Shown piece by piece: positions 4,801 to 64,000 of a stretch of DNA of 64,000 nt. The position numbers and the translations under genes are program-made. The DNA is taken from the NCBI RefSeq assembly GCF_046119375.1, contig NW_027362771.1, positions 180,668,001 to 180,732,000 of the forward strand, given 5' to 3'. The first letter of the stretch is position 1; every line of letters begins with the position of its first letter. The notes below the pieces were generated by a model. The model worked only from the letters and a program-made list of their open reading frames with translations. It made no database searches and was not told where the DNA came from. This DNA is from Phyllobates terribilis. Lineage: Eukaryota.

Positions 4801-7800
4801 GACCCAGCTCCAACCATTTTAGTGGCGCTGGCAGAATCTGACGGGAAAATGCCAAAAGTTGCACATTTTCTGAGCAGCTCTGCATTGCACGAAAATGTTG
4901 CAAATTTTAAAACTGTTTTAGACCAGAAAACTGTTGTAAATACTTCGATGAACTGACCCCAATATGTATTACTATATGCAACAGTGAAAAATAAATATAT
5001 TACATTAAAAGCCAACTGAAGTGAATTCAATTGAGAAAACTCACCAAGGCTATTTTCTTTAGCTCATTTGTGGCATCAAAATTGTTTGGATCCAATTCTA
5101 AAACCTTTTCATAATCTTTGGCAAAAACAGAACAATTACACACATGAAATAAATACTTTGTATATAAATAAGATTTATCATTGCAACACTAAGGTTATGT
5201 GAGCACGATCAGGAATTGCTTGCAAAAATTTCTTCAGCATTTCTGCAAGATTCTGCACCTCTTGGCAGCAAAAACTCAGCGCGTTTTTTTTTTTTTTTTT
5301 TGCATTTTCATGTATTTTTTGTGCGTTTTTGCCATACGTTTTTTCCAATGCATTCTATAGGTCAAACGCAGGCAAATCCACACAAAGAATGGACATGCGG
5401 CTTCTTTTTCCACACATGAAATCCTGTCAGGAAAATTCCTGATCATGTGTACAGATCTTCCAAAATCCTATAGAAAATACTGGACAAGGTTTGCTATGCA
5501 TTTTAGGGGCCAAATCCGCGCGCATTTGCAGCAGTAAAAACGCATAAAGAACGCACCGTGTGCACATACTCTAAAATAGGGGTCCCCAACCTGTAGCTCG
5601 ATTCACTGGTAAATACAAGTCACTAAGTTGCTTAAAATTGTACTACTTTTCATCAATCCTTGTATCTCAGAAAGCTGGTTGATGACCAGAACTGTTTTCG
5701 CAAACAATTTCCAATGTCTCAAATAGCAAATAAAGTAGCAATAAATACTCATAGAAACCTTCTGTGGGAATTTGTAAAAAAAAACATTAGACAACCTTCC
5801 TTTGCTCCTTGGAAGTTCTTCAATGCCAGGCGACAGGCTCCTCTGCGAGCATAAGCCTTCCAGTAATTACGGTTTAAAGCAATGGCCAGATTGCAGTCTG
5901 ATTCAGCAACAGCATACCTAAAAATAACAAAAAAAGAAACATATGGAAAGAAAATGAAGTCATAGTCAGCTTGTTCAGGAAAAACACCACCAAGGCAAAA
6001 CACTTACTTTCTTAGTCTAAAGAAAGCAGATGCTCGATTTGTGGGCAGGACCGCATTGTATGGATCAGCATTCATGCTTCTTGTATAGCACTCGATAGCT
6101 TCATCATAATTCCCAGCTTTAAAATAATTATTTCCCTGAGTAAAAATTGAAAATGTACATAATTATTATTTAAGATATCATTGTTTCAAATTTGTCTGCA
6201 TTACCAAGTTTCTACAGTTATAAAGTTAACACCTTATATAGCCAAGGCCTGATTCCACAAAAAAAATGTACAGTACAGACCAAAAGTTTGGACACACATT
6301 CTCATTTAAAGATATTTCTGTATTTTCATGACTATGAAAATTGTACATTCACACTGAAGGCATCAAAACTATGAATTAACACATGTGGAATTATATACTT
6401 AACAAAAAAGTGTGAAACAACTGAAAATATGTCTTATATTCTAGGTTCTTCAAAGTAGCCACCTTTTGCTTTGATGACTGCTTTGCACACTCTTGGCATT
6501 CTCTTGATGAGGTTCAAGAGGTAGTCACCGGAAATGGTTTTCACTTCACAGGTGTGCCCTGTCAGGTTTAATAAGTGGGATTTCTTGCCTTATAAATGGG
6601 GTTGGGACCATCAGTTGTGTTGTTCAGAAGTCAGGTGGATACACAGCTGATAGTCCTACTGAATAGACTGTTAGAATTTGTATTATGGCAAGAAAAAAGC
6701 AGCTAAGTAAAGAAAAACGAGTGGCCATCATTACTTTAAGAAATGAAGGTCAGTCAGTCCGAAAAATTGGGCAAACTTTGAAAGTGTCCCCAAGTGCAGT
6801 TGCAAAAACCATCAAGCGCTACAAAGAAACTGGCTCACATGAGGACCGCCCCAGCAAAGGAAGACCAAGAGTCACCACTGCTTCTGAGGATAAGTTTATC
6901 CGAGTGACCAGCCTCAGAAATCGCAGGTTAACAGCAGCTCAGATTAGAGACCAGGTCAATGCCACACAGAGTTCTAGCAGCAGACACATCTCTTCAACAA
7001 CTGTTAAGAGGAGACTTTGTGCAGCAGGCCTTCATGGTAAAATAGCTGCTAGGAAACCACTGCTAAGGACAGGCAACAAGCAGAAGAGACTTGTTTGGGC
7101 TAAAGAACACAAGGAATGGACATTGGACCAGTGGAAATCTGTGCTTTGGTCTGATTAGTCCAAATTTGAGATCTTTGGTTCCAACCACTGTGTCTTTGTG
7201 CGACGCAGAAAAGGTGAACGGATGGACTCTACATGCCTGGTTCCCACCGTGAAGCATGGAGGAGGAGGTGTGATGGTGTGGGGGTGCTTTGCTGGTGACA
7301 CTGTTGGGGATCTATTCAAAATTGAAGGCATACTGAACCAGCAGTGGCTACCACAGCATCTTGCAGCGGCATGCTGTTCCATCCAGTTTGCGTTTAGTTT
7401 GGACCATCATTTATTTTTCAACAGGACAATGACCCCAAACATACCTCCAGGCTGTGTAAGGGCTATTTGACCAAGAAGGAGAGTGATGGTGTGCTACGCC
7501 AGATGACCTGGCCTCCACAGTCACCAGACCTGAACCCAATCGAGATGGTTTGGGGTGAGCTGGACTGCAGAGTGAAGGCAAAAGGGCCAACAAGTGCTAA
7601 GAATCTCTGGGAACTCCTTCAAGATTGTTGGAAGACCATTTCCGGTGACTACCTCTTGAAGCTCATCAAGAGAATGCCAAGAGTGTGCAAAGCAGTCATC
7701 AAAGCAAAAGGTGGCTACTTTGAAGAACCTAGAATATAAGACATATTTTCAGTTGTTTCACACTTTTTTGTTAAGTATATAATTCCACATGTGTTAATTC

Positions 7801-10800
7801 ATAGTTTTGATGCCTTCAGTGTGAATGTACAATTTTCAAAGTCATGAAAATACAGAAAAATCTTTAAATGAGAATGTGTGTCCAAACTTTTGGTCTGTAC
7901 TGTATATATATTTATTTTGTAGGGATTGACACTCAGCAATAGGTGGCATTCACACAGGCAATGCGATTTGGTCCAACCATGGAGTTTTATGAAAGCAGGA
8001 AAACCGCACAAGCGATTCATAACCAAAACAGCCTCCTCTGGGCAGAAAGGTATAACAGCAAATTAACAGTTCATTGAGCAGGCACATATAGGTCAGTGGG
8101 GAATCACCCAAACAGATTACAGTCCTTTCTCCCAGAGCAAACTTTATACACAGAAGAGGTACGGTCCCACCAGTCTCAGTATCACCTTCAGCCTGAGCTC
8201 CAGCAGTTTCCAGCACCAAACAGAAGTGCTCAACGCTGTGCACAGTTCACACTGAACAAGCTGCAGCTTTCACACACTTCTGTGCAGCTCCAACACACAG
8301 ACTGCTCAGCTTTCCTAGCTGACCAATGCGCTCTGCATTCAGAGCGAGACTATGGCTTGTCTCTTTCTCAGCTACAGCTCAAATTTTAGCTTGTCACTCC
8401 CCACTCTACTCAACATCCCCAGCAAACAGAGCTTCCAAGTGAACACATGCCATGGTTCTTAGTGAAAGCTAGTAAGGTGCATCTAATGAATACCTGCAGT
8501 TGTAGGATTTAACCCAGACCTACCTGGCTTTTCTACAAAATATATAAGGTTTATTTTTTGCTATGAAAATGAACAACCTTTTTTCAATTAACAACAAAAG
8601 CTCTAAAATGTTTCAAATGAAACTGAATGCTATACCCTATAAAAGGTATTCCCATGTCTGCCATTCATAGCTGAGGTAAGATTATTCAACTCAATGCAGC
8701 AGCCTCAAGAGCAGAGGACTATGAAGAAGTCAATCGAGTGGGATTACACTGGGAGATACAAAAATAGTGTAGTGCAGCACACTTGATCAAGTCCGGATTC
8801 CTGGTCTCCTGGAGCTGCCATCAGTCTGCGTATTCCAACCACACCTTTGCCGTGTTCAGGAGTAATTTCAAATGATGTACCGCTAATTAACAACTATGCA
8901 CAGTAAGTTCTGAGCTCACAGCACTCTGCTGACGCTGCACCAAATAAACTATGAATTCATGAATGTTACACCATAGTCACAAGTGACACATCGCTAAAAT
9001 CCATGTCTATTACTACTTTATTCTGCTCGATCTAAGTTGCATAGACCTGGTGAATAATTTGCTTTAAAGTTATAAACAACTTAAAAAGTAAATTCATAAG
9101 GCCAAATTAACCCAAAAGTCAGTGCAAAGTATGGACACTTCAGCAGTCAGAGCGCCTGTATTCCTTAGAAAAGAGTGGAGATTTTTGTATTTATGGATCT
9201 ATCAGTAGAACCACCATGTCCATCTCAGGGCTCATTGAGACAAGTGTATTGTACAGACATGTTGTCAGAGTTAAAATAGGACAGAACACTGACCAATGTT
9301 ATTGGATAGGGCTGTTTAGATGACGGTGTCCTTTTAAAAAAAAGAAAATGCAGCATACGCTATTCTTTTCCAAATATCAGAGGAGACTCATCTATTCAAG
9401 TCTATAGGTGTGCAAAAAAAAAAATTGGCGTCCATCCAGAAGGTCCATATTGCAACTGACTTTTAAAGATGCATTTATCATTATTAAAATAGGAATCTAC
9501 TTGATATTTAGACTGATGATCTATAAATATGGATGTGACTCGGATGTAAAAACGGACACACAAATGGCACACAGATGAAATATGAATGACAACAAGACAA
9601 ATGAAAATTGTCTAAATTTTCTGATTTAAAAAAAAAATCAGACAATTGTTCATACAATCTTCAGCACCTGCCCTAGTGTTCATTAAACAATACTCACATT
9701 GCTTACTAGTATTCTCTAGAAGACATTTACTCCTCATTTCCCAGCAAATATGTAAATCCTATTAAAGGGGAGTTCAGTAGGCCTGTGCTTCATCAGGATT
9801 CAATTTTATCTCCTCTCTCCTGCCACCAGCAATGAGAAACAGTCAAAACCTTCCTGAAATCTGGGAAAATCTACCATGTGTAACCACAGACATATTGTCC
9901 ACATAGCATTCACATATTATCAACTTGCAGGTGTTGCAGATGAAAGTGCTGCTGGAAGATGGGTTCTTTCTAACAGTAGTACTATGGACACAACAACTTC
10001 TAAGCACGGGGCGGATTTCATCAACAGGAGCAGTGAGAAGAGCTAGTCAGTCAAGCTAGGTGGGTGTCGGAGTTTGCAGCCAGAATACACCTGGAATCTG
10101 GCAGTGCATAGCTGGAGCCATAAAATGCTAAGCGCTCAGGAAGGATTAGAGAGTCATTCTGGGATGGATTTGTAACGCAAGTACATCATCGTCACCATGT
10201 CTAGGTGATTTATGTCATGATATACATTGTTAGACCTGGCGACAGATCCTCTTTAAAAGGGTTGTCTGTTCTAAAATATTTACGTAACAGTCACAGGAAT
10301 TGCCAGAAATGTTCAGAAACTGCGGGTCTCAGTGCTGGAATCTGCATGTATCTCTAGAATAGGGCTTTGTCGCACGCCACAGGGATCGAAGTGGTGGAAT
10401 CGCATGCGTGGCTATCTCCACTCATTTGTGGGACTGTGCTAAAATGTCCCATATGGGAATAACTATTTAGTAACTAAAACTAGAGAAATAAAAAATATCC
10501 ACCAGACATTACCCAAATTCTAGCAATTTCAAATTTTTTAAGAGTTTGTATACCTTTTCTTTTTCTGCTAAAGCTTTTACTGTATCAATTTGAATGCCAT
10601 CTTCACCCTCAGAGTCAGATTCGGCAGACATTGATTCATTAGTGTTGTCCTCTTTATCAAGTTCCTGTAAGGCTTTGTCCTAAAATGATAAGATATACAA
10701 CTTACACTGGAAAATCTATCATGCGTATGATAAAATGAATACAGATGTGTCTACTACAAAGACAACACATAACAAGCTATTCAATTACCAAAATTACTCC

Positions 10801-18912: not shown

Positions 18913-21900
18913 CTGTATGTATATTTTAAAAATTGTACATTCACACTGAAGGCATCAAAACTATGAATTAACACATGTGGAATTATATACTTAACAAAAA
19001 AGTGTGAAACAACTGAAGATATGTCTTATATTCTAGGTTCTTCAAAGTAGCTACCTTTTGCTTTGATGACTGCTTTGCACACTCTTGGCATTCTCTTGAT
19101 GAGCTTCAAGAGGTAATCACCGGAAATGGTCTTCCAACAATCTTGAAGGAGTTCCCAGAGATGCTTAGCACTTGTTGGTCCTTTTGCCTTCACTCTGTGG
19201 TCCAGCTCACCCCAAACCATCTCGATTGGGTTCAGGTCTGGTGACTGTGTAGGCCAGCTCATCTGGCGTAGCACCCCATCACTCTCCTACTTGGTCAAAT
19301 AGCCATCACACAGCTTGGAGGAGTGTTTGGGGTCATTGTCCTGTTGAAAAATAAATGATGGTCCAACTAAACGCAAACAGGATGGAATAGAATGCTGCTG
19401 CAAGATGCTGTGGTAGCCATGCTGGTTCAGTATGCCTTCAATTTTGAATAAATCCCCAACATTGTCACCAGCAAAGCACCCCCACACCATCACACCTCCT
19501 CCTCCATGCTTCACGGTGGGAACCAGGCATATAGAGTCCATCCATTCACCTTTTCTGCGTCGCACAAAGACATGGTGGTTGGAACCCAAGATCTCAAATT
19601 TGGACTCATCAGACCAAAGCACAGATTTCCACTGGTCTAATGTCCATTCCTTGTGTTCTTTAGCCCAAGCAAGTCTCTTCTGCTTGTTGCCTGTCCTTAG
19701 CAGTGGTTTCCTAGCAGCTATTTTACCATGAAGGCCTGCTGCACAAAGTCTCCTCTTAACAGTTGTTGAAGAGATGTGTCAGCTGCTAGAACTCTGTGTG
19801 GCATTGACCTGGTCTCTAATCTGAGCTGCTGTTAACCTGCGATTACTGAGGCTGGTGACTCGGATAAACTTATCCTCAGAAGCAGAGGTGACTCTTGGTC
19901 TTCCTTTCCTGGGGCGGTCCTCATGTGAGCCAGTTTCTTTGTAGCGCTTGATGGTTTTTGCAACTGCACTTGGGGACACTTTCAAAGTTTTCCCAAGTTT
20001 TCGGACTGACTGACCTTCATTTCTTAAAATAATGATGGCCACTCGTTTTTCTTTACTTAGCTGCTTTTTTCTTGCCATAGAATTTGTATTATTGTCTATT
20101 CAGTAGGACTATCAGCTGTGTATCCACCAGACTTCTGCACAACACAACTGATGGTTACAACCCAATTTATAAGGCAAGAAATCCCACTTATTAAACCTGA
20201 CAGGGCACACCTGTGAAGTGAAAACCATTTCCAGTGAATACCTCTTGAAGCTCATCAAGAGAATGCCAAGAGTGCGCAAAGCAGTCATCAAAGCAAAAGG
20301 TGGCTACTTTGAAGAATCTAGACTATAAGACATGTTTTCAGTTGTTTCACACTTTTTTGTTATGTATATAATTCCACATGTGTTAATTCATAGTTTTGAT
20401 GCCTTCAGTGTGAATGTACAATTTTCATAGTCATGAAAATACAGAAAAATCTTTAAATGGGAAGGTGTGTCCAAACTTTTGGTCTGTACTGTGTCTGTCT
20501 ATCTATCAAGCTGACTCCCATCACTTTCTGTCCCTCAGATCCATACACCAGGCTCCTTTTAGATGCCATGAAGAGATCTGGTTGGTAAGTGTCACTCATG
20601 GATCAGTAGAATCCCTCCTTTTTCCACTACAGAATGCAGTTGTCTCTATGAAATGTAAATGAAGGAAGATTCCGGGGATCCCATGTCATTGTGGCCATAG
20701 ACAGGCAGCTTTAGAAGGAAACCTATGTGTACAATGTCCTATTTTAGTGTCTGTTTGGGCACGAAGACTCTTTCCTCTCCTTAGTTACTCTTTTAGAAAC
20801 AAAAAAAGTCTTGTATTTATTAGATTTTACTCACTATTATTAACACCATTAATTCCACATCATCATCACTGTCCCCATTGGGGCTCACAATGTGAATCAG
20901 TATGTCTTTGATGTGTGAGCGGAAACCTGGGTACCTGCAGGAAACCCAGGAAAGTGTGCCATGTACCCATCACTGTTCCGTTGTATGTCTGGGAGGGTTC
21001 TCTCAGAGATGGGATGTATACACATGGGTCTTTCCTTATCTTTTCTCCTGAGATACGTCCTTAACCGATTTGATGAATAGATAATGACGGTAGTATTGAT
21101 AGAGAAGCTGTTCTACCACAAGGACATTGATGTGCCCAGGAGAAGGACTTCTGTCGCTTTATTGATAATATGTACAACTCTGGCACTGACATATGACAAG
21201 ACTTTGTTGCTTCACATATAGTGTCCATCCCACATTTCGACCTTTGAGAAGGTTACCTGTACCTGTGTGAGGTCGGCAAGGAGCTTCAGAATGTCACAGA
21301 TACTCACTGCGACACTGTCCGCATTCTGAGCCTCCATGCCGACCTCTCACAGGTACTGATCACCTTCACAGGATCAAGTGGTCAAAGCCTTGGATGTACA
21401 GTATCTGTTTATTCACTTGTCAGATTCATTAAAATACTCTTGAAACAAATATCTAAGTCTTGTCATACTCAGTGCCGGCTATGCATATTATTTGTATAAT
21501 AATGGGCCCTTACCATGTTTCATTCCTTAATTGGCACAGGAGTCTATTTAGAGGACAGAATGACCCCCAATAATGGCAGGTACGCTGAAAACCTCACTCG
21601 CATATCAGCATCTGTATATTCATAGTGACAAAGCTGCTGCAGCACATTGAATAAAAAAAGCAATGCCAAGTGGGCTGACTAGTTAAGGTACACTCTTGTC
21701 CCCTTTATTGGGATTGAAGACGGCTGAGTCGGTAAGCCAAACCACCAACTCAAACTCCTCAATTTCCCTGACTCCCGACTCCACAGCACGGCCTCACTAC
21801 TGAGCGTGTACATAAAGTGCAGCACAGATTCATCTCCACTAAAAGCTCAGATCCTTCGATCAGGAACAGAACAGAACAGACATTTATAGGACATTTCATA

Positions 21901-28812: not shown

Positions 28813-30372
28813 CACTGCTCAAAAAATAAAAGGGAACACTTAAACAACAGAATATAACTCCAAGTAAATCAAACTTCTGTGAAATCAAACTGTCCACTTA
28901 GGAAGCAACACTGATTGACAATCAATTTCACATGCTGTTGTGCAAATGGAATAGACAATAGATGGAAATTATTGGCAATTATCAAGACACACTCAATAAA
29001 GGAGTGGTTCTGCAGATGGGGACCACAGACCACATCTCAGTACCAATGCTTTCTGGCTGATGTTTTGGTCACTTTTGAATGTTGGTTGTGCTTTTACACT
29101 CGTGGTAGCATAAGACGGACTCTACAACCCACAGAAGTTGCTCAGGTAGTGCAGCTCATCAGGATGGCACATCAATGCGAGCTGTGGCAAGAAGGTTTGC
29201 TGTGTCTGTCAGCGTGGTGTCCAGAGGCTGGAGGCGCTACCAGGAGACGTGGAGGGGCCGTAGGAAGGCAACAACCCAGCAGCAGGACCGCTACCTCCGC
29301 CTTTGTGCAAGGAGGAACAGGAGGAGCTCTGCCAGAGCCCTGCAAAATGACCTCCATCAGGCCACAAATGTGCATGTGTATGCACAAACGGTTAGAAACC
29401 GACTCCATGAGGGTGGTATGAGGGCCCAACGTCCACAGATGGGGGTTGTGCTCACAGCCCAACACCGTGCAGGACTCTTGGCATTTGCCACAGAACACAA
29501 GGATTGGCAAAGTTGCCACTGGCGCCCTGTGCTCTTCACAGATGAAAGCAGGTTCACACTGAGCACATGTGACAGACGTGACAGAGTCTGGAGACGCCGT
29601 GGAGAGCGATCTGCTGCCTGCAACATGCTTCAGCATGACCGGTTTGGCAGTGGGTCAGTAATGGTGTGGGGTGGCATTTCTTTGGGGGGCCGCACAGCCC
29701 TCCATGTGCTCGCCAGAGGTAGCCTGACTGCCATTAGGTACCGAGATGAGATCCTCAGACCCCTTGTGAGATCATATGCTGGTGCGGTTGGCCCTGGGTT
29801 CCTCCTAATGCAGGACAATGCCAGACCTCATGTGGCTGGAGTGTGTCAGCAGTTCCTGCAAGATGAAGGCATTGAAGCTATGGACTGGCCCGCCCGTTCC
29901 CCAGACCTGAATCCGATTGAGCACATCTGTAACATCATGTCTCGCTCCATCCACCAATGTCACGTTGCACCACAGACTGTCCAGGAGTTGGCAGATGCTT
30001 TAGTACAGGTCTGGGAGGAGATCCCACAGGAGACCATCCGCAACCTCATCAGGAGCATGCCCAGGCATTGTAGGGAGGTCATACAGGCACGTGGAGGCCA
30101 CACACAATACTGAGCTTCATTTTGACTTGTTTTAAGGACATTACATCAAAGTTGGATCAGCCTGTAGTGTGTTTTTCCACTATAATTTTGGGGGTTGACT
30201 CCAAATCCAGGCCTCCATTGGTTAATAAATTTGATTTCCATTGATGATTTTTGTGTGATTTTGCTGTCAGCACACTCAACTTTGTACAGAACAAAGTATT
30301 CAATGAGAATATTTCATTCATTCAGATCTAGGATGTGTTATTTGAGTGTTCCCTTTATTTTTTTGAGCAATG
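28813..30372 (+). mobile_element. Tc1 (DD34E) transposon between the two ATP23 paralogs
   Basis: TA|CACTGCTCAAAAAATAAA…TTTATTTTTTTGAGCAATG|TA. A 312-aa ORF (29175-30113) has FTDESRF, QDNARPH and DLNPIE with 34 residues between D and E. The N-terminus is damaged (ATA at the expected start 29110, frameshift near 29160). Confidence 0.92.
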
Positions 30373-34300: not shown

Positions 34301-37300
34301 GTTTTTTTTTCTTTTTCTCCAGAACATTGGTCCATGTATCAAAATGTTCATGTGAGCCTAACCATTCACTAATATTTCTCTGTATGTGGCTCGTTTTCCA
34401 CATGGCCAGCACTTGGATTGAATGTGAACGTTCCCTTATGTGTGTGGTGTTTGAAGAGTTGGGATGACTTTATATTAAGATGTGCTTAAGAGGTCATATG
34501 CTGTAAGAAAAGTTAGAAGTTATCTAGTATAAAGTGGACAGTATCTGTTTATTCTCCTTTAGGGGCACATTTATACAGTGGCATGTAAAAGTTTGGGCAC
34601 CCCTGGTCAAAATTAATGTTATTGTGAACAGATAAGCAGGTTGAAGAATAAATGATCTCTAAAATGGCTTAAGTTAAAGATGACACATTTCGTTTGTATT
34701 TTAGCAAAATAAAAAATATATTTAAATTTTTTTTTTACATTTTAAAAATTACTAAAAGAAAAATGGACAGCTGCAAAAGTTTGGGCACCCTTGGAGATTT
34801 GTGTGCTCAGATAACTTTTGACCAAGGTTTCAGACCTTAATTAGCCTGCTAAGGTCATGGCTTGTTCACTATCATCTTTAGGAAAGGCCAGGTGATGCAA
34901 ATTTCCCAGCTTTATAAAAACTCAGCCTCCTCTAACCATGTGCCAAAAAACTGCAGCCATGGGTTCTTCTAAGCAGCTGCCTAGCACTCTGAAAATGGTG
35001 GATGCCCACACTATAGGAGAAGACTATAAGAACATAGCAAAGTGTTTTCAAGTTGCCCTTTCCTCAGTTCTAAATATAATTAAGAAATGGCAGTTAACAG
35101 GAACAGTGGAGGTCAAGATAAGGTCTGGAAGACTAAGCAAAATTTCAGTGAGAGCTGGTCGTAGGATTGCTAGAGAGGCAAATCAGAATGCTTGCTTGAC
35201 TGCAAAAGACCTTCAGAAAGATTTAGCAGACTCTGGAGTTGTGGTACATTGTTCTACTGTTCAGAGACTCCTGCACAAATATGGCCCACATGGAAGAGTC
35301 ATGAGAAGAAAACCTCTCCTGCGTCCTCACCATAAAATTCAGCGTCAGAAGTATGCAAAAGAGCATCTAACCAAGCCTGGTGCATTTTGGAAACAAGTCC
35401 TGTGGACCGATGAGGCTAGAATATAACTCTTTGGCCACAATGATCAAAGATATGTGTGGAGAATAAAAGAGCACATAATTTCAGGAAAAGAACATCTCGC
35501 CAACAATTAAGCATGAGGTAGATCAATCATCCTTTGGGGTTGTGTTGCAGCCAATGGCACAGCGAACATTTCACGGGTAGAGGGAAGAATGGATGTAATG
35601 AAATTTCAACAAATTCTTGATGCAAACATAACACCATCTGTAAAAAAGCTGAAGTTGAAAAGAGGATGGCTTCTACAAATGGATAATGATCCTAAACACA
35701 CGTCAAAATCCACAATAGACAAGCTCAAAAGCGCAAGCTGAAGGTTTTACAATGGCCCTCAGTCTCCTGATCTGAACATCATTGAAAATCTGTGGCTAGA
35801 CCTCAGAATAGTAGTGCATGCAAGACGACCCAGTAATCTCACAGAACTGGAAGAATTTTCCAAGGTAGAATGGATGAAAATCCCTCAAATAAGAATTGAA
35901 AGCCTCTTGTCTGGCTACAAAAAGCATTTACTAGCTGTTATACTTGCAAAAGGGGGTGCTACTAGGTACTAACCATGCAGGGTTCACAATAATAGTAATT
36001 TTGACCAGGGGTGCCCAAACTTTTACATGCCACTGTACATACAGGCAAAACTGGTATAAAATAAAAGGGACTAAATGCAGATACATCTTGCAAATTGGAT
36101 CCGTGAGAGCTTCCGGTGGAGAAGAATACTGCTGGAAATAGGGACAGATTTGTGTTACACATTGCATCTCCTGGGGTCTTACACATTTGTTAATGAAATG
36201 TTATAAAGGGTCTCACCAAACCAATCACCCCCTCCACTGAGGTCAGACGGGGACGGCAGATTAGATTAGATTCTAATCCTCATTTCTGCTCTGGGTCATA
36301 TTTTCCCCCAGGAGCCTCCTAGAAAAGCAATATGACAGTTATCTTATTGAACATCCTTCAAGCATACCACACATGAATATGATATATCCATATTTCAGGG
36401 ATATATGGTGCTCCTTTGGATTGCCAGCTACCAGAACTTTTTTAATTTTACCGACAAATGCAAATATGCTCCCCATTCATGGATATATCCATGAATTTTA
36501 TAAAACTAAACTTCTAATACAAAAAGCCTTAATATTGCTTGACTTTGTTCTCATTATGAAGTACAGACAAAACGGTTGCATAATGTGAAAGCATTGATGC
36601 CCCTGCATTTAACACCTATGTGCCAGTGGAGGTGTACAGGGACACATCTGCTGGCCTAAATGGTTATCCAATATTGACAGCTACCTGTTAATTTCTCTGT
36701 GTATGCAATCCATGTCTGTTCTTCATCAGATAACCTACTTCAATTACCTGTTCACATCGGGGGGTGCAGGCAGTGATCCAGTTCCGCTAGCCTTTGATCA
36801 GTATAACTCATAACTCCACTTCTGAAACTCTCATTATATTTGTCTTTTTTCTAGATTGTTATATGTCAGAATAATATTAATGATCAAAGAACCATGAACA
36901 GAATGCTTACACATGAGTTGATTCATGCTTATGATCACTGCCGCGCCCAAGTTGACTTTTTAAGTAACATTCGGCATTTGGCCTGCACTGAGGTATGTTC
37001 ATTTTCACATTCTAGTATTTTAGTAACTTTTTAGAAAAAAAAATATTCTTTTTATTTTAAGCCAATGACTGTTGACGTAAAGCAACTAAATTAAGAGCAT
37101 CGCTTAAAGGGTTTGCACCAAAAATGCAAATCGTATAATCATAGGATGGGCGATAACTTGCTGATTACTTGGGGTCCAATCACTGAGGTCCCCTCTGATC
37201 GTTAGATCAGGGCTCTGGAGCTGTAGTGTGCATGCAGGACCATAGCATTACTCAAACTAGTCATTTCAAAGTCTCCTGTTGTTGATCTCTGGGGTCAGGC

Positions 37301-43830: not shown

Positions 43831-45779
43831 ATTCTGACGGAGTACTCCTCCCATCAGCCTAAGACGTTTTTAAATAGCTCTTGATCCTACTTGTCCATAT
43901 AATTATAACTTATACTTGGATATAGACTCCAAAAAACTACTTGCAATCATATAAAACAATATATTTTATTGAAAGATTCTTTAAAACACCAAAAAATACA
44001 GCAATTAAACAGAAGTGAATAAGGGGAGGTTCAAGAAAATGTGGATACATGTGGTCCAGAGTATTATCCAATATTAAATAAAATATAATTGATATAAATT
44101 AATTTGGGATCACAGCCAAGAGGGCCATGCAATATGATAGCCTGGTATCCAACCCCTGAAAAGAAGAGGGGGGGGGGGGGGGGGGCTGAAGACATCAACA
44201 AGAAAGAACACCTGTACTGTTTCAGCTCATTTTATGTTAATTATGTAAACTTTAATGCAGCTCACCTAAATAGGCAAAGTAATGGAGGACCATATGTTCT
44301 CAGATCTTAAGGTATGCATGCAAGTGCACAAATAGTCCTACATAGTGAAATAGTAAGATCATCATGAGCTGTCAGGCGTTTCGCACTGTAGGCTTTCTCA
44401 AGGGGAGTGTGTGAATAGTCAGACCTCATCCTGTTTATACCTATCCCAATCGTGTTTGTGCCAATAGAGGCTCCGCATGTTTGCACCGTCCCAGCGGCAC
44501 AAACACGATTGGGATAGGTATATGGGATAGGTGGCAATCCATAAAGTGCTTCATGTTAAAACTGAAAGACCCTCAAAACTTAGTTTTGACTTTATAAGGA
44601 GGATTTTGTTGCGTTTCTGTTCAAAAACCGTGTTCACACTGATTGTTTTGGAAGAGAAACTGAGCAGAAACTCTCCTAATCCTTCTCAAATACTCCATTT
44701 GGTTCTGATGTATTAATGTACTGACTGTGGTTCTGGTGCTGTATTTATTTAAGTACCCCTTTCAAATTATTGGTGACCCTTTGTATTGGTTCAATATGAC
44801 AATGTGGCCTTTGGACCAAAAAAAATGTTGTACGTCGCTGGCCTAGGCAGTAACTTTTTCATACGTTGTGCAGTGGCTCAGGAAAGATTAATGTATTAGT
44901 ATATAGAGGATTTGAGTGCTTCTACTGTATACTGCAATACAATAGCATTGCAGTGTATAGTGAATTTCTTGGTCTCCGAGGCTGAGCTTCACAGAAGTAC
45001 CAAGATGACTGCTATGGGGATCTTCAACAAACCCCTGGCGGTCATAGTAACCCATCGATTCCCCCAGCGCTCTTGTCTCGGGAAGGGTGGGGGGTGATGG
45101 GAACAAGTGCACATCCATTCAAATGCCGCTATTGGAGATTGACAGCAGCGTTTAAATGGTTGACAGGTGTGGTCGGAAGCTATCTCCGACCACGGCTGTT
45201 AGAGACTGATGCCAGCATCAGCCATGTGTGAAGGGAGCTCTGCTCCTGAGTCCCCTCCCCACATATGGACTCCTTCCCAAGATGTTAATTCATGTCCTAA
45301 TGCAGAAAAAGGTTAAAAAAGGGGTGGTGTGGTCTAGGGTCACATCAAAGAAAGATACAAATTGGTATGGCTGGTGGATACACTTGAATTGGCTAGTTTG
45401 TGGCTTAGTATCTCAATTGTATAAGTATATTCTATATTGCAGTAATGCAGTGTAAAATTCACATATTCAAAGTTTGCCTTCATCTCGGCACACAATGTGC
45501 AGCTGTATTCTTGGTTTTATATATTTAGCAATATCTAGACACTCAAGCATTTTTTTTAATGATTTCCATAGACAAAATGTTTTGTATGATCTGACAGTAA
45601 ATTACTATTTCTTGGATAACCCCTTTTAATGTTACAGTATATACCGATATAGTATTGACACTCGTATGCCTCCAAAATTGCACAACTATGCTCCTGTGCC
45701 CAAGGCGATTTCCAAAAAGATACGGTTACATGGGTCTGGTTTGCACCCCTTCAGCCCAATAAAACACCTTGAAGATTAA

Positions 45780-48293
45780 CCCTCCGTCACATAGAACCGA
45801 TATTGTAACGAGTTCACATACAATGTGACTGTCAGGCGCAGGCTAGAAAAATACCTATAATATCTAATGTTTGCAATTTCAGTGCTCTAAAAGTGATCAG
45901 TGACCTTCATAGGGATGTAATAAAAGAGACTACACATACTCAGGTGCAAAAAAAAAAAAAAAACATTTACTTAACATAAAACTAATAACTCTGAAATACA
46001 AACATTTCAAAACTCCCGCCAAATAGTCCCCAGTTCGACTCTGTCCAAAAACTCTACAAAGAAAATTTATGGAAACAAACTTAATTTTAAGGTACCTTAA
46101 GTACTATTAAACACATATTCAATCAGAATTAGATCCTGAAGTTTCCCCAGAAAAATTACACTTGCAGAGCAAAGAGCAAGAATTACACATCATTTTTGCA
46201 TGTGTCAGGCAGATTGCATTGTGACATTTGTGACATTCATAATTAGAAAGCCTTCTGATTCCGCTTTCCGTGGTGCAGGTGGTGCATCTCCTTCTTTTGG
46301 GAGGTGGTGCAGGTGGTGAATTTTCACTATCATCTTCTGGGCGGAATCTTTTGAGCTGAACTTGAAGGCGAGAGGAGATACCGATTGTTTTCATACTTCT
46401 CCTGCGTAGATCTCCAAGCACTAGTTCATGGGCCAATTTTTTCAGATAGAATCGTCTACGGAGTGGTTCAAGCTTGTTTTCAAGGTAAATGACTTGTGAA
46501 TTTATACCACCCAAATTCAACATAGCAAAAAATATGACCATTGGCCAGCGTTTGGTGTTTCTGCTGACGTTGAAAGTTGAGCACATCTGATCAGCTGTAT
46601 CAACACCCCCTTTGGTTGCATTATAAAATGTAATTATCTCCCGGTTTTTTTTTGCCTCAGTCTCAGGATCGATGGCATCATCATCATGAAGTGTTGATAG
46701 AAGAAGTACAAATTTTTTTTGCTTGTGGTACATAGGAAACCAAAACCTTTCCATTATGGAATGCAAACATACTGCTGTACTGTTGTCTCCCTTTCACACT
46801 TACAAACTGTGTAGGCAATTCTTTTTTATTTTTTCTTACAGTTCCGACATATGAAAGCTTCTGCATTTTCAGATAATCAATCAGATCACAATTTGAAAAC
46901 CAATTGTCAGCTGTTGTATTGCGACCCGATCCAAATAAGGGCTCAGCCAGTCTTTTTACAACATCACTGGGTTTGTTGCTGACACAGTAAGGACCTTCTG
47001 GTTCTTTTCCTGCATAAACTTCCAGGTTGTAAGTGTAGGTCTTACTGGCATCAACAAGGGCATACATTTTTATTCCATAGTTGTTAGGCTTTGATGGAAT
47101 ATATTGACGAAAGGCACATTTACCACGAAAACCAGGGAGCATTTCGTCAATAGTGAGATTCTGCCCAGGGCAATAGCTTTTTTTACAGTTTTCAACAAAT
47201 TTTTGGAATATATCACGAATTGGAGCAAGTCGGTCATGTGTTTTACGTTCGGTTCGGGTAGTTCTGTCGTCAAACCGAAGGCAAAGAATTAGAAGCTTGA
47301 ATCTGTTTATGGACATAACCAGGCCAAATTTTTCAACTCCATCCCCATCTTTACTCCAAAGTTCCTCCAAACGTTGTCTATTTGCCCTATAAGCTCCTGC
47401 AAGGTATAATAATCTAAAAAAAGCACGCAGTTCTATTTCATCTGTGGCCGTGATGGTTCTGTTGCAGATGAACTTGTCCTTTATAATGTCTATATATTGG
47501 TTGGTATATGTGACAATAGAGTCCAGAATGTCATCTGTGAATAAACTATTCCAGCATTCAACTGCAGTTTTTGCATTACTTGCAGTTCCTATAACTGCAG
47601 GAAGGTGAGTAATAATGTTTTGAGGTTCCCTACGTTTTTTCTGGAGTGGCTTCTTGTTCCATTGTTTTTTTTATCTTTTCCCATATAATAAGATTCTACA
47701 TCTTCATCCTCATCACTGTCACCATCTTGCTCTGTTTCAGAATCCACTTCACATACTTCCACCTCATCATGAGAATCAATCTCACTTTCCTCTCCTAAAT
47801 CCTCATTCAGTGTGGGGTCTGCATCATCTAACAGCATGTTTGTTACTTCTTCAACATCAAGGTTTTTTGATAAATTGTACATTTTCCTCTCCATTTCAGC
47901 AGATAATCTGAAGCAAGAGAAGGAATATGTGTTAGGGAACTACTGTATATGCCTGAGCAGCACACTTTCTTTTTTAATCTGCCTTATTTCTATGAAATAT
48001 CCTCACACTTTGTGCTATACATTCATAAAACAAGCTAAATAAACAATTGTGATGAATAAAAACATAAAATACCAACCTTATTGAGTGTGACGTGTTCACA
48101 TACAATGAGCCTGAGAGATTAGCGCAGTTATATCTGTCCTCCTGAAGCTCTGCAATCCAACTGTGGTATGAGGTTTCACAGAGCTGCTAGAGACAGGAGA
48201 CTACCTGGAGGGAGGGGATTTCCTCACAAGTGAGGAAGGAGAAATGAAAGTAAAAGAGATGTGCCTGTCAGGCCTATTGTATGTGACGGAGGG
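45780..48293 (-). mobile_element. Full-length piggyBac transposon (2514 bp)
   Basis: TTAA|CCCTCCGTCACATA…TATGTGACGGAGGG|TTAA (14-bp TIR, TTAA TSD on both sides); transposase 47894→46119. Confidence 0.95.
46119..47894 (-). pseudogene. piggyBac transposase (~591 aa if repaired), two single-base frameshifts, no in-frame stops found
   Basis: Acidic N-terminus; TIDEMLPGFRG, ADNWF and KGGVDTADQ catalytic motifs; C-terminal Cys-rich domain (CTTC…CHKCHNAICLTHAKMMCNSC). Frameshifts in A8 runs at about 47665-47672 and 46713-46720. Confidence 0.88.
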
Positions 48294-50148
48294 TTAATTA
48301 AAATTTCAATTGCCAGCCAGGCCTCCGCATGGTCATCATGTATGCTTTTCTGGCTGCGCACAATTTTCCCTTGACACATTTCGCACACTGAAAATTACCA
48401 TCGGAGACATGGGATGGTGTCCGCATTCAATTGATTTTCTCAATTCCTTGTATAGCTCTCTGATAAAATTTCTACTTTTTGATGAACTGCTTCCATATTT
48501 CATAGATTCTTTATTTAGAAATAGAAAAGGTTGCCAGTCAGATTTTACAAGCAGAGTGACTGATACATGACATATACATTTCATTTGCTGAAACTGGAAT
48601 ACTCATTTAACAAAGTTATAAAATGTTTAATAAGTAATGCTCATTATGCTGAATTTTATTGTGGACCCTTAAGTCTTAAATTCTATTTAGCAGTGCAAAA
48701 GTTTGGATTTCTCTCTTCTAAATGGAGCATTTTAGGTTTTGCGTTAATTTTATGATGCCAAACAGCAGAGGGCGCCACAAGGCAAAAAATAACATAGTAA
48801 TGCAAGGAAAGCAGTGCTGGTAAATCTGCTTATGTTCTAGTTAACATGTTCTTACTGTGCTGGTTGTTAGAAGACTTCTCTCTGTCTCATCCTTTCATGC
48901 TGTTGCTCCTTCAATAGCCATAAGTTATAGTGGTTACAACGCCCCTACGGACTGGAGCAGTAAATGGGTTGACATGAGCATTGATGAATTCAGTTATTGT
49001 TGCCCTGTCATCTCCAGCTCCGAGCAGCTTATCCTATGGATTCAACAATACTTGAGTAACAAGGCTGGGACAAAAAGCAGCCAGAGTGTGCAGTCGCCTA
49101 GGGCGCTATTGAGGAGGGAAGCGTAATTTATGGACTACAAAGGCCACACCATGCTCTACTTTAAAGGGGTTATCTGGGAGCTTAATATTTATAACCTATC
49201 CTTTGGGTAGGTCACCGACATGGAATCTGACTTTTGGGACCCCCACTGACCGGCTGATCACCTGGACTGGGGGTGGTATGGCTCTGTACATTGTGTAATG
49301 GCCTTGCCATGAATGGTACTGCAAGCTTACTCCTAGATAAGTGAATATCATGACCAGTACAGATTGTATGAAGCTGTTTTCAATAGATTCACTTTCATTC
49401 AGTTAATTGGTGAGGGTGCCAGGTGAAGACCCCTACCGATTTAATATTGACGACTATATTAAAATCCTGGAATATGCTTTTATATTTCATTGCACAATAA
49501 TTTTAAAGGAACTCTTTTTCACCAAGTTTTTTACTACCCTATTTGAGTGTAGCAAGATGTAGGGGCAGAGACTCTGATTCCAGCGATCTGTTACTTATCG
49601 GGCTCCTTACTGCAGTTTTAGTAAAATCACCATTTTATCTGCTGCAGATCTACCAGTTCTCTGGATGCTGGGCTCTGTATAACTAGAGTTCTAGTCCTCT
49701 TCCTCTCTGAAGAATCAATTTGCAAAATTAATTTCCCAGGGGAGTATGCATGGTGTATAAGTCTCCTCACTCTGACATGCCAGGCCTGGCTTGTCACTCT
49801 CCACAAGGAGAAATGTAACCCCTTAAACCCCAGTCTTAAGCCTCTTACCCAGTCAAATCAGATCTCATACTTGGCACTGACGAGAGGCAAAACCCCTAAA
49901 CACTGTGTCTGCTGAGAAAGCAAAGCAGTATATAATTCATGAATATATACAATCTGGAAAAGTCCATAATACTGCCAGGGGAAAGGACCTTTTTAGAGGA
50001 CGGATCATCAGATAATAATGGGGGATGTCTGCAGAGCAGAAAAAAAGTGACATTCACTACAGTTCATAATATAAAATATACAAATGTTATTAATACATAT
50101 AAATACAGAAAAAAAGGGACAAAGAATTGCCGAGGACAATATTATATA

Positions 50149-54062: not shown

Positions 54063-56542
54063 GTCATGGGTTATGTTGACACTTGCGATGGATCTCATAT
54101 TTCTGTGTATACCTAGATGTGCACATGGTCATAAAAAGCTAAACTACTATACCATTAAAGAATGCTCCACCCGATAAATGTGTTTATCTGCCCCTGATCT
54201 GGGACATATGCTGCTATCACCTCTAGTTTCTGGTGACCATTGAACCTCAGCTTGCTTTTCATCTGATTCTGAGCCGCTCGCAGTTTAGCAGACTTCAGAT
54301 TCCCATTAGCATCGCTATTCACCTGGCCTCACACCATCACCTCTTTCCAGTCTTCTAGAGCACCTTCAGCTTTGCTGTCAGCTATTTCTCCGCTTGCCTT
54401 CATGGTAAATTTTTCTATAATCAGTGAATTTTCCCAGGACACAGCACTATGCAAACTCCTGCCTGCACAAGAAACTTGTTTTATTTTATTCTAATGTTAG
54501 AACTTTGTTAATTTTTATTTGTATTTTGTCTTTTCCATGGAGTTGAAGTTTCCTTCCTTTTCTCCTTTATACCAGGTGTCTCATGGAAGTTTTTAAATGG
54601 CTATGCATTAAGTCCGCTTTAGCTTTCTAATACGTTCATTTTGGCATTATTTTACTTATATATATTTATTTATTGAATACAGCTACAAAGAAAACAGTAA
54701 GCCACAAAAAAATTTACAGTAATATAAGTTGTAGTATCGGCGTCTCTGCCCCCTGACAGGCAGAGACGCCGTCCCCCTTACCGCCGCGCTCCCGGCCCGG
54801 CGTCTTCCGGCTCTCCTGCTGCTGCCGGCGCGTGCAGCTTCCCGGGCACTGTGCTTAGGGCACGCGCTCCCTCCCTCTTAAAGGGGCCGTGCGCGCCGTC
54901 CTAAGGAGTCCCCGGCCAATGGCCAGAGGACCTCTCATATAAAAGGCACCTCCTCCAAAATGGAGGTGCCCGTGCAAGGTTGTAGCTTTGTGTCCTAACT
55001 CTGCTCCAGCCCTCAGTTCCCGGAATAGAAAAAAATACTCGGGAGCAGTGGGAACAAAATAAGAGCAAGACCTGGCCACTTTCACCTGGTGACAGGTGCA
55101 CTTTAAGTAAATGTTTGCATTTGTATAAAATATCTACAGCTCTTCAGATAAGTTGTGATGCTCTGTGCACCAAGATGGCACTTGGCATTAATATTTTAGA
55201 ATGTTATATTAAAAATCCGATTTATGTTTAGCATCTTATATTCTGAATGTTTTAATATTGCTATACTCAGCATTTTTTCTTACATTCCTTGAGTTTATGT
55301 GATGAGTTTTAGAAGACACAGATGATGTTGTGGGATTTAGATACTTATGTTGTAAATACTCTGTGGCTTTGACTACTCTGCAGGTAGCGAGTTGATAAAT
55401 TAGAGTGTTAGAACCCGGACTAAAGACCCCCCCACCTTGTAGTGAGAAGTCGAGGGCCAGCAAGTACTTAATAATAAATTACCAAGTTCTGCAGTTTAGA
55501 GATTAGGAAACATTCTAAAAGTATAGGATTGGCCGAACATGTACTTCATGCATTGATAACTACCCCCTTCCTGACATCTGCTGTACATGTACGATTCATC
55601 TTGGGTGCCGGTGCACAAAGTGAGCTCATGACCTGAGCATGCGTCACGCAAGGCAGGTGGCGGCGTTCTTTACTACTTAAAAGGAATTTGTCATCAGGTT
55701 TGTGCTATGTAATCTGAGAGCAGCATATGTAGGGGAAGAGACCCTGATTCCAGTGATGTCACTTATTGGGCTGTGTTTGGCTATTCAAAACAAGCAGTGT
55801 TTTATCAGCAAGAGATTATCACTACAGAACAAGCTGCCTTTGTGCCTTCTAGTCCAACCCCGCCCTCAGCACTGATTAGCAGCTCTCTGTACATTGTACA
55901 CAGAAAGCTGCAGGACTCAACTGTCATGGGTGTGTCAGAAGTGACACAGTCGCCCTGCAGATGGTTGCAGGAGATCTCTACATTTAGCATTACAGACATC
56001 TTCTTAGAGGCAGTCTATAGGACCCAGTGGCTACCTTCCTCTGGCTAATTAACACCCTGGCCTGGGTGTATAAATACCTGTTGTGTTTCAGAGTGAGGTG
56101 CTGACGATATTCAATACTACTTCTGAAGGCATTAGCAAGAGCAGTACTTCATCCTCTCTGGAGCTTGAGGACATGTGCACATTTGTCTGGAGTCGTCTAA
56201 AGCTAAGCAATTTCCCCTTGTTTGTTCACCCTTGTTGTCTATAGTGTTTAGTGGAGATCGACTAGTGCTTATCTACTCTCTTCCTTAGCCTTTATAAAAC
56301 AATGAATGAACTTCTAGCGTTTTGTTTTTTTTAATAGGAAGAACCCTTCAAGCTTTTTCTACGTGATTTTTTTCCAGGGAAAACCCACTCAAAAAAACAC
56401 CAGGGGAAAAATAGAAAAATATAGTGTGAACACACTCATACATAAGCCAGTGCTGAGGTAGATGGTCAGATGCATACATGTATGTAAGTATGCTTTTATG
56501 CATCAGTTTACTGAAAGCTAGCCATTGTTAGCATAAAGTTCA

Positions 56543-57362
56543 GCCATTATTCTGTATGGAGTACTATGTGGGGCCCATTATTCTGTATGGAGCACTATGT
56601 GGGGCCCATTATTCTGTATGGAGGACTATGTGGGGCTATTATTCTGTATGGAGGACAATGTGGTGCACATAATATTGTATTGAGGACTATATGGGGCTCG
56701 TTATACTGTATGGAGGACCATGTGGGGCCCATTATTCTGTATGGAGCACCATGTGGGGCCCATTATTCTGTATGGAGGACCATGTGGGGCCCATTATTCT
56801 GTATGGAGGACCATGTGGGGCCCATTATTCTGTATGGAGGACCATGTAGGGCTCATTATTCTGTATGGAGGACCATGTGGGGCCCATTATTCTGTATGGA
56901 GGACCATGTGGGGCCCATTATTCTGTATGGAGGACCATGTGGGGCCCCTTATTCTGTATGGAGGACCATGTGGGGCCCCTTATTCTGTATGGAGGACCAT
57001 GTGGGGCCCCTTATTCTGTATGGAGGACCATGTGGGGCCCCTTATTCTGTATGGAGGACCACGTGGGGCCCCTTATTCTGTATGGAGGACCACGTGGGGC
57101 CCTTTATTCTGTATGGAGGACCACGTGGGGCCCCTTATTCTGTATGGAGGACCACGTGGGGCCCCTTATTCTGTATGGAGGACCACGTGGGGCCCCTTAT
57201 TCTGTATGGAGGACCACGTGGGGCCCCTTATTCTGTATGGAGGACCACGTGGGGCCCCTTATTCTGTATGGAGGACCACGTGGGGCCCCTTATTCTGTAT
57301 GGAGGACCACGTGGGGCCCCTTATTCTGTATGGAGGACTATGTGGGGCTCATTATACTGTAT
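56543..57362. repeat. 31-bp minisatellite, about 26 copies
   Basis: Unit GGGGCCC(A/C)TTATTCTGTATGGAGGACCA(T/C)GT; period of 31 confirmed (CATTATTC at 56761 and 56792). Confidence 0.95.
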
Positions 57363-58133
57363 ACTGGTTGGCCCTCAACTTTGTCCAAGTTTTTAATTTT
57401 GGCCCTCTGTGTGTTTGAGGTTGACATCCCTGCTCTAAAGTGCCGGGTGTATTGCAGCAAATATAGCACTTCAATCTCTGTGACATAGGAACTCCCTAAT
57501 AGTTCAGACATATTGCTGTAACACATTCTGTTTTATTTCACCACGAAGTGCTAACTATAATGGCCAGCAATAGAGAAAGACATTTGGAATAGTGACATTC
57601 CTTCTACTCCTACCTTACTAACATTACACGTAAAGCAATTTGTGGAAAAAAGGGTGAAAACTCATGGGGGAGTTAAAATAGCTATATAACCGAGAAGAAC
57701 AGATTTAGACAAGATACTGTATAACAGGGCAGGCTTTTTAACATTTCTAAATTCAATGTTATGTATTCACAATATAAATAACAACACAGTAAACTAGTGT
57801 GAAGGACTGAAAATGAAAATCTATCAATTTCAGCCTATTTTTCCTGTAATGTTAGTCCAGAGAAAGGGAAGATCCTTAGGTGGAAGTCATTTTTTTCTCA
57901 TCTTAGGTAAAATCCCTTTATTGATTCCAAATATGATCCATGGATCAATAACCAATCAGCATTGTTTGCAGAATAATTAGACAATATTTATTTCTGATGA
58001 TTAACTTTATTATTGAATAACTACAGAGCTGTTGGTCAATCCAAAAGTTTAATAAACCTGAATATTTAAGAAAGTAAAAGTGAGGGTTTGTCTTTCTTAG
58101 GAGAATATGGGTGCAGAATTATTGGACAACTAT

Positions 58134-63086: not shown

Positions 63087-64000
63087 TATCCCCCCCCCTA
63101 TGTTCAAACTTGTGGGGTTGAACACTTGTCACCATACAGGTTGCCCGTGACAGGGCATCCACATTCCCTGCGACTTCCCAGCCAGATGTTCCATCGAAAA
63201 ACTAAAGTTTTGTAGGGACAGGAACCATCTGATAACCCGAGCAAGCCTCTCCTTTGCATTTCTCATCCAGATGAGGGGCGAAGGCGAATGGTCCATTACC
63301 AAACAAAACTGTTGCCCGAGCAAATAATAGCGTAGAGACTCCAAGGCCCACTTAATAGCCAAGCACTCCTCCACTACGCTATATTTTTTTCTGCCGGGGT
63401 AAGTTTCCTGCTCAAGTAGGTGACTGGATGTTCCTCTCCGTTCACCTCTTGCGACAGTACTGCTCCTAGGCCTACCTCAGAGGCATCCATTTGCATGGTG
63501 AAGCCTTTCTTGAAGTTGGGGCTGGTGAGGACAGGCTGTCCACACGACGCCGACTTCATGAACTGGAACGCTTCCTCCGCTTGAGGGTTCCACCGAACCA
63601 TAACCGACTTCTTACCCTTTAACACATAGGTCAGGGGCGCCGTTCTCGCAGCAAAGTTAGGTATAAATCGTCGGTAGTACCAGACGATGCCGAGGAATGC
63701 TCTCACTTGTTTAGTAGTCACAGGCTTGTGCCAGTTTTGAATGGCTTCGATCTTGTTTGGCCGTGGGGTTATCAAACCACAAATAATCACGTACCCCAAG
63801 TACCAGGCTTCCTTGAGACCTATCACACTTTTTTGGGGTTCGCTGTCAGGTCTGCTACTCTGAGCGAATCCACTACTGCTTGTACCTGGGACAAGTGGGT
63901 CTGCCAATCGGTACTAAAGATGATTCATCCAAATATGCGGACGCGTACTTCTGATGGGGCTCCAAAACTATGTCCATCAGCCTCTGGATTGTAGCCGGGG
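63087..64000 (-). mobile_element. Gypsy/Ty3 LTR retrotransposon pol (RT C-terminus plus RNase H), frameshifted, 5'-partial
   Basis: QRLMDIVLEPHQKYASAYLDE (degenerate YLDD), QVRAFLGIVWYYRRFIPNFA, TDAS-like MDASEVGLGAVLSQ, YLSRKL, ECLAIKWALESLRYYLLG, RWFLSLQ; followed directly by the PPT and LTR. Confidence 0.92.

Follow-up and report, generated by a model that had tools for sequence, protein, structure and literature searches.

Naturally active piggyBac transposons are few in vertebrates and are sought as tools for gene transfer as well as markers of ongoing genome change. The element described here occupies 2,514 bp at positions 45780–48293 of the window, the 64-kb stretch of Phyllobates terribilis DNA that was analysed as a whole. 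An earlier note on this sequence had presented it as possibly intact and recently active, with two homopolymer indels in the transposase gene as the only disabling lesions. This raises the question whether the frame is open in the real allele and the two indels are errors of the assembled sequence, or whether the copy has decayed since it was inserted.

The element is framed by perfect TTAA target-site duplications at 45776–45779 and 48294–48297, and its 18 terminal bases, TTAACCCTCCGTCACATA (TTAA plus a 14-bp terminal inverted repeat, TIR), are the same at both ends in inverted orientation. At the left end, which is 3′ with respect to the transposase gene, the TTAA at 45776 is followed by the TIR CCCTCCGTCACATA (45780–45793, plus strand), which matches the other end perfectly. 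At the right end, TATGTGACGGAGGG runs into the TTAA finishing at 48297, and the TIR of the 5′ end (48280–48293, minus strand) is likewise perfect. In the 64-kb window the TTAA-plus-TIR pattern occurs at two sites, which are the two ends of the element, against a chance expectation of 0. The TIRs are of the CCC..GGG type, as required in the piggyBac superfamily. Thus, the perfect TIRs and target-site duplications reported in the earlier note were confirmed.

A sub-terminal motif, TCACATACAAT..CTGTCAGGC, accompanies both ends and is found as inverted and direct repeat pairs. At the 45.8-kb end it is situated 20 bases inside the TIR (45814–45840, plus strand), whereas at the 48.3-kb end the repeat at 48260–48286 overlaps the TIR, which renders the two ends asymmetric. 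End asymmetry of this sort is typical of piggyBac. A third copy of the motif at 48096–48117 lies within the non-coding 5′ part of the element (47910–48279, minus strand), which also holds a candidate 5′-UTR intron with a possible donor AAG/GT at 48077/48076. The non-coding 3′ part (45794–46118, minus strand) contains an A16 run on the plus strand at 45947–45962. The parts required in cis for piggyBac transposition, namely TTAA sites, TIRs and sub-terminal repeats, are intact. A second copy of the element was sought in the 64-kb window and none was found.

The transposase gene is located on the minus strand and extends over 1776 nt from the ATG at 47894 to the end of the stop codon at 46119. 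It consists of three open pieces separated by two one-base shifts, which cancel each other (net shift 0), just as had been described before for a frame of about 591 codons. Frame 1 is open from 47939 to 47592 and includes the ATG at 47894–47892, frame 0 is open from 47670 to 46687 (328 aa), and frame 1 is open again from 46793 to 46122, followed by the stop codon at 46121–46119 (all on the minus strand). The gap between the open reading frames listed for the locus (47661 to 47370), already translated as open in the earlier note, lies within frame 0. No stop codon was found in the proper frames of the three pieces, and the two one-base indels are the only frame breaks.

Each piece contributes a recognizable part of the protein. 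The first (47673–47894, minus strand) encodes an acidic N-terminal region, 89–100% identical to the N-termini of relatives from P. terribilis and Anomaloglossus baeobatrachus. The middle piece (46721–47664, minus strand) comprises the main part of the DDE_Tnp_1_7 domain (PF13843, 5.8e-61) with the first two catalytic aspartates in the motifs LTIDEM and ADNWF. The third (46119–46709, minus strand) contains the end of this domain (PF13843, 2.3e-10) with the third aspartate in GGVDTADQ, the Cys-rich domain and the stop codon. Among solved structures, the transposase of Trichoplusia ni piggyBac (6x67) is the best match, with E-values of 6.9e-56 for the middle piece against residues 104–413 and 7.2e-28 for the last piece against residues 409–593. 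In this alignment the three motifs coincide with D268, D346 and D447 of the T. ni enzyme, and all cysteine and histidine residues of the C-terminal zinc domain are aligned up to residue 593; the isolated domain 5lme is matched with an E-value of 0.0058. The presence of all three catalytic aspartates and of the Cys-rich domain, as previously proposed, was therefore borne out by alignment to 6x67. In conclusion, 45780–48293 is a structurally complete piggyBac, in which every piggyBac-defining feature tested is present (TTAA, TIRs, sub-terminal repeats, PF13843, DDD triad and Cys-rich domain).

The closest proteins are 17 sequences, all from poison frogs: eight gene models of P. terribilis, eight of Ranitomeya imitator and one of A. 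baeobatrachus (P0128). The family members annotated as 'piggyBac transposable element-derived protein 4-like', several of the P. terribilis models among them, are 88–100% identical to the window copy over the shared parts and agree with it in the 591-aa layout and the N-terminus. Unbroken 591-aa frames are found in three of them, P0129 and P0219 of R. imitator and residues 361–951 of P0128. The intact R. imitator pair (XP_069589943.1, XP_069611561.1) differs at 8 of 591 residues, and in A. baeobatrachus XP_075194775.1 the transposase forms the C-terminal 591 aa. In contrast to the members of this family, which read through both break sites, the copy in the window is frameshifted and exceeds every other copy compared in its number of strictly private changes. 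Since every relative covering both sites reads through in a single frame, the breaks are either lesions of this copy or assembly errors and not a feature of the family.

The first break (−1 on the coding strand) coincides with an A8 run at exactly 47665–47672, where the copy reads GAT AAAAAAAA C AATGG and the relatives read GKDKK[T/K/N]QWNKK. With an added A, the K variant of three P. terribilis models is obtained and an A9 run is implied; addition of a C after the seventh A gives T, and addition of a C after the eighth gives N. A contracted A9 run would hence be one of three equally short routes, given that K, T or N is found in the relatives at this position. A C lost after the seventh A was likewise considered as the event at this site, an assignment that carries less weight since the K and N variants leave the same three routes. 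The second break (+1; 46710–46720, minus strand) reads GC AAAAAAAA TTT GTA. Here, an A8 run at exactly 46713–46720 is directly followed by TTT at 46710–46712, where the relatives imply TT. Removal of one T restores AKKIV, removal of one A gives AKKFV, and all relatives covering the site read AKKIVLLL. Accordingly, no change in length is implied for the A8 run and the additional base is a T (TT to TTT), provided that, as assumed for both sites, no further change has occurred there and the codons deduced from the relatives' proteins are the right ones. Read in this way, the second indel would be an expansion of a T run from two to three bases beside the A8 run, unlike a classic error in a long homopolymer. 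The earlier note, which had placed a −1 in one A8 run and a +1 in the other, was thus correct about the location of both runs and of both breaks. Its contracted A run at the first site is retained as one route of three, and its additional base within the second A8 run is replaced by a T in the adjoining run.

In order to compare the copy with its family at the protein level, it was read through with an X at each break and aligned to the 17 relatives from the three species. Over 590 residues, 11 changes are strictly private, i.e. absent from all 17 relatives, and 13 were counted by eye as residues without a match in any relative of the copy's own subfamily. A single base substitution suffices to derive each private change from the family residue. 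Those in the middle piece are K→T, G→R, S→R, R→L, E→Q, K→N, Q→E and I→T. In the numbering of the read-through protein, R161, L204, N272, E298, T327 and R419 belong to the private residues. The stretches FFRLLY and RNTTADNWF, which the earlier note had flagged as off-consensus, are indeed private to the window copy with respect to the relatives. Conservation of the affected sites was scored in 79 distant full-length piggyBacs that are 41–69% identical to the family, and sites identical in at least 90% of them were regarded as conserved. Near-invariant residues are replaced by G→R (G in 78 of 79), K→N (K in 75), Q→E (Q in 79) and P→R (P in 76). Three of the 11 strict private changes fall on conserved sites, which make up 22% of all sites, and this is the share expected by chance (binomial p = 0.72); P→R is one further change at such a site. 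As a control, the 52 fixed differences that separate the R. imitator subfamily from the group of the window copy were inspected, and none of them lies on a conserved site (0/52; Fisher p = 0.004). Conserved sites are spared by changes transmitted through active lineages but not by the changes of the copy itself, which indicates that the latter arose after insertion and under no selection. The pattern of private changes in the protein alignment is hence best read as neutral decay after insertion. Some of the 'private' changes could be traits of a species-specific subfamily, a reading that is disfavoured because they strike near-invariant residues.

The extent of this decay can be estimated in several ways. 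In the maximum-likelihood tree, the end branch of the window copy (0.021) is among the longest in the family, whereas those of P0128 and P0126 measure 0.0077 and 0.0043, respectively. In 19 public sequencing runs from 7 organisms, 0.55–0.70 of the sampled 31-mers of the element were recovered and no run came close to 1.0. The runs are mostly small (10–992 million letters), and the shares obtained across several species suggest that the family is abundant or transcribed there. Assuming an even spread of differences, the share of 0.70 translates arithmetically into about 29 differences in 2514 bases, suggesting that the nearest copies are about 1.1% divergent. This value fits the 13 replacements and two indels together with the silent and non-coding changes expected at an equal rate. 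The ratio of indels to substitutions is roughly 1:10, so that about two indels in 1.8 kb are expected at a neutral divergence of about 1%. Neither the preservation of the ends (36 bases) nor the lack of stop codons is surprising in a copy that has diverged by 1.1%. With a frog substitution rate of roughly 1e-9 per site per year, an insertion age of the order of ten million years would result. Of the description as "possibly intact, recently active", the complete structure, the restriction of disabling lesions to indels and the existence of intact 591-aa relatives hold. An intact or recently active state of the copy itself is not upheld: the number of private changes, the long end branch and the best 31-mer share of 0.70 speak against recent activity, and the two frame breaks in the assembled sequence against an autonomous intact element.

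Taken together, the locus is probably an ordinary ageing piggyBac copy, which drifted neutrally after insertion, whose frame was broken by two indels and which most likely gives rise to no transposase; both indels, we infer, are real. An alternative explanation regards both as consensus errors of long-read sequencing, in which case the real allele has an unbroken 591-codon frame and may encode an active transposase. It can draw on the position of both breaks at or beside A8 runs, where such errors concentrate, on the mutual cancellation of the shifts and on the A9 run that the K variant of the relatives implies at the first site, and it accords with proper frames free of stop codons and with perfect TIRs and TTAA sites. 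However, at the second site it is a T run that has grown, from two to three, with the A8 run unchanged, and the frame is kept at the third of the long runs in the ORF, which is A9 on the coding strand (46645–46653). Moreover, for a polished assembly of modern long reads, two consensus errors within 1 kb would be highly improbable, which counts against an artefact at both sites. Even with the frame open, the protein would carry G→R, K→N, Q→E and P→R at residues that are 95–100% conserved in the 79 distant kin, a pattern of neutral decay. Judged from these replacements, it is doubtful that a fully active protein would be made even if both indels were artefacts, and this explanation as a whole appears highly improbable.

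Between these two stands a mixed case, in which one indel is real and the other an assembly artefact, the A9-to-A8 site being the likelier artefact. Such a division is in keeping with the two sites, of which the first, unlike the second, looks like a typical contraction of a homopolymer; we hold this case to be unlikely, and the copy would be dead either way. Finally, the A-rich slippery runs at or beside both sites could in principle allow the transposase to be made through programmed shifts, by ribosomal or transcriptional slippage. This would need two compensating slips in opposite directions, whereas the relatives covering the sites are all in one frame and P0129, P0219 and P0128 are unbroken. 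To our knowledge, no such slippage mechanism exists for piggyBac. Programmed frameshifting is ruled out by the straight read-through in the relatives, and its probability is negligible.

For the preferred reading, an ageing copy under neutral drift, the following course of events is proposed. An autonomous-type piggyBac of a poison-frog (Dendrobatoidea) family would have been inserted at a TTAA by cut-and-paste, duplicating this tetranucleotide. Since then, neutral drift would have introduced about 1% of point changes, among them about a dozen amino-acid replacements, and two one-base indels. Judging from the frame breaks, the copy itself would supply no transposase. With its two ends and TTAA sites preserved, the copy could in principle still be moved by a transposase from an intact copy elsewhere; mobility in trans would consist of precise excision and re-insertion at a TTAA by the transposase of an intact member, if the genome has one. 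The window copy is thus probably moderately old and non-autonomous, and most likely dead. It is probably not one of the active vertebrate piggyBacs.

In the maximum-likelihood tree of the family, the window copy forms an unresolved star with those of P. terribilis and A. baeobatrachus. The copy of A. baeobatrachus, a member of the Aromobatidae, is placed inside this P. terribilis-type star with 2–4% amino-acid differences, whereas the copies of R. imitator, which like Phyllobates belongs to the Dendrobatidae, differ from the P. terribilis-type group by the 52 fixed differences mentioned above. Similarity among the copies of the three frogs is therefore out of step with taxonomy, and either the differential retention of old subfamilies or horizontal transfer among poison frogs is the cause. 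That the family, as distinct from the window copy, is still mobile in some poison frogs and may also have moved between frog lineages is a tentative proposal, to which we give some weight while considering it rather unlikely. The family may still be live in R. imitator, and its intact transposase genes in related species are candidates for activity. If this family is still mobile, the window copy, its ends being perfect, would remain open to mobilization in trans.

Among sequences from other sources than frogs, the nearest relatives of full length are 60–68% identical and stem mostly from insects, e.g. Schistocerca nitens, in addition to assembled contigs. By sequence similarity, the frog family is thus placed among insect-type piggyBacs. 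Scans of metagenomes with the TIR pattern and with the middle protein piece gave no match. A search of the literature on piggyBac in poison frogs retrieved no paper describing the poison-frog family represented at 45780–48293; most hits concern other matters, in one case tadpole transport ('piggyback'), and one survey of anuran transposable elements handles PiggyBac as a class only. The poison-frog family is of a well-known kind, and the window copy itself is ordinary. The family is of mild interest owing to the intact genes of R. imitator and A. baeobatrachus, the fusions through a splice acceptor in two species and the mismatch between similarity and taxonomy. Beyond this family, the comparison provides a way to judge a broken frame that looks repairable, by asking whether the private amino-acid changes avoid conserved sites, which is not the case here.

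A splice acceptor is situated 13 bases upstream of the transposase ATG (47895–47909, minus strand; AG at 47909–47908, ..tcttgcttcag/A), and the frame is open from there into the ORF (..LSAEMERK). Gene models of two species make use of this position: the fusion models P0123 and P0001 of P. terribilis, labelled as SUGCT isoforms, and P0128 of A. baeobatrachus join host exons exactly before LSAE. P0128 combines a part with a BTB domain with the whole 591-aa transposase, and its gene spans 88 kb.

The surroundings of the element are rich in transposons, with Tc1/mariner copies, a piece of an LTR retrotransposon and a 31-bp tandem array within the 64-kb window. Tc1/mariner transposase ORFs with HTH_Tnp_Tc3_2 and DDE_3 domains were found at 29175–30113, 34938–35426 and 6685–7158, all on the plus strand, and the first of these (312 aa) is long enough for a near-complete copy. 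The Tc1/mariner copies around 6260–7913 and 18925–20492 are 95–98% alike and arranged in inverted orientation. The tandem array at 56508–57458 consists of about 30 units and produces long spurious ORFs on the plus strand. An ORF at 63374–63907 (minus strand) encodes the RT-linked RNase H domain of an LTR retrotransposon and heads towards the end of the window. Within these 64 kb, no host gene was seen.

Among the known systems close to the element is piggyBac of T. ni (transposase structures 6x67/6x68). Both elements share the TTAA duplication, short CCC..GGG TIRs and asymmetric sub-terminal repeats, and the transposases have in common a length of about 590 aa, the DDE_Tnp_1_7 domain, the DDD triad and a C-terminal Cys-rich domain, being alignable over residues 104–593. 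In contrast to the T. ni element, the present one resides in a poison frog, has a different TIR sequence and possesses a splice acceptor just before the ATG; moreover, the frame of the window copy is broken twice and private changes affect conserved residues. With piggyBat of Myotis lucifugus (9c0f) and TxpB/Uribo2 of Xenopus it shares a vertebrate host, complete ends and a full-length transposase gene, but piggyBat is much more distant in sequence (E-value of 2.6e-17 versus 6.9e-56 for T. ni). piggyBat and the Xenopus elements are vertebrate piggyBacs that have been reported to be active or recently active. Human PGBD3 possesses a splice acceptor just ahead of its transposase ORF, through which host exons can be joined to the whole transposase, giving CSB-PGBD3. 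The poison-frog family resembles this arrangement in having an acceptor just before its transposase ORF and fusion gene models in two species. It differs from CSB-PGBD3 in that the frog fusions are predicted by gene models and that no host gene is visible around the window copy.
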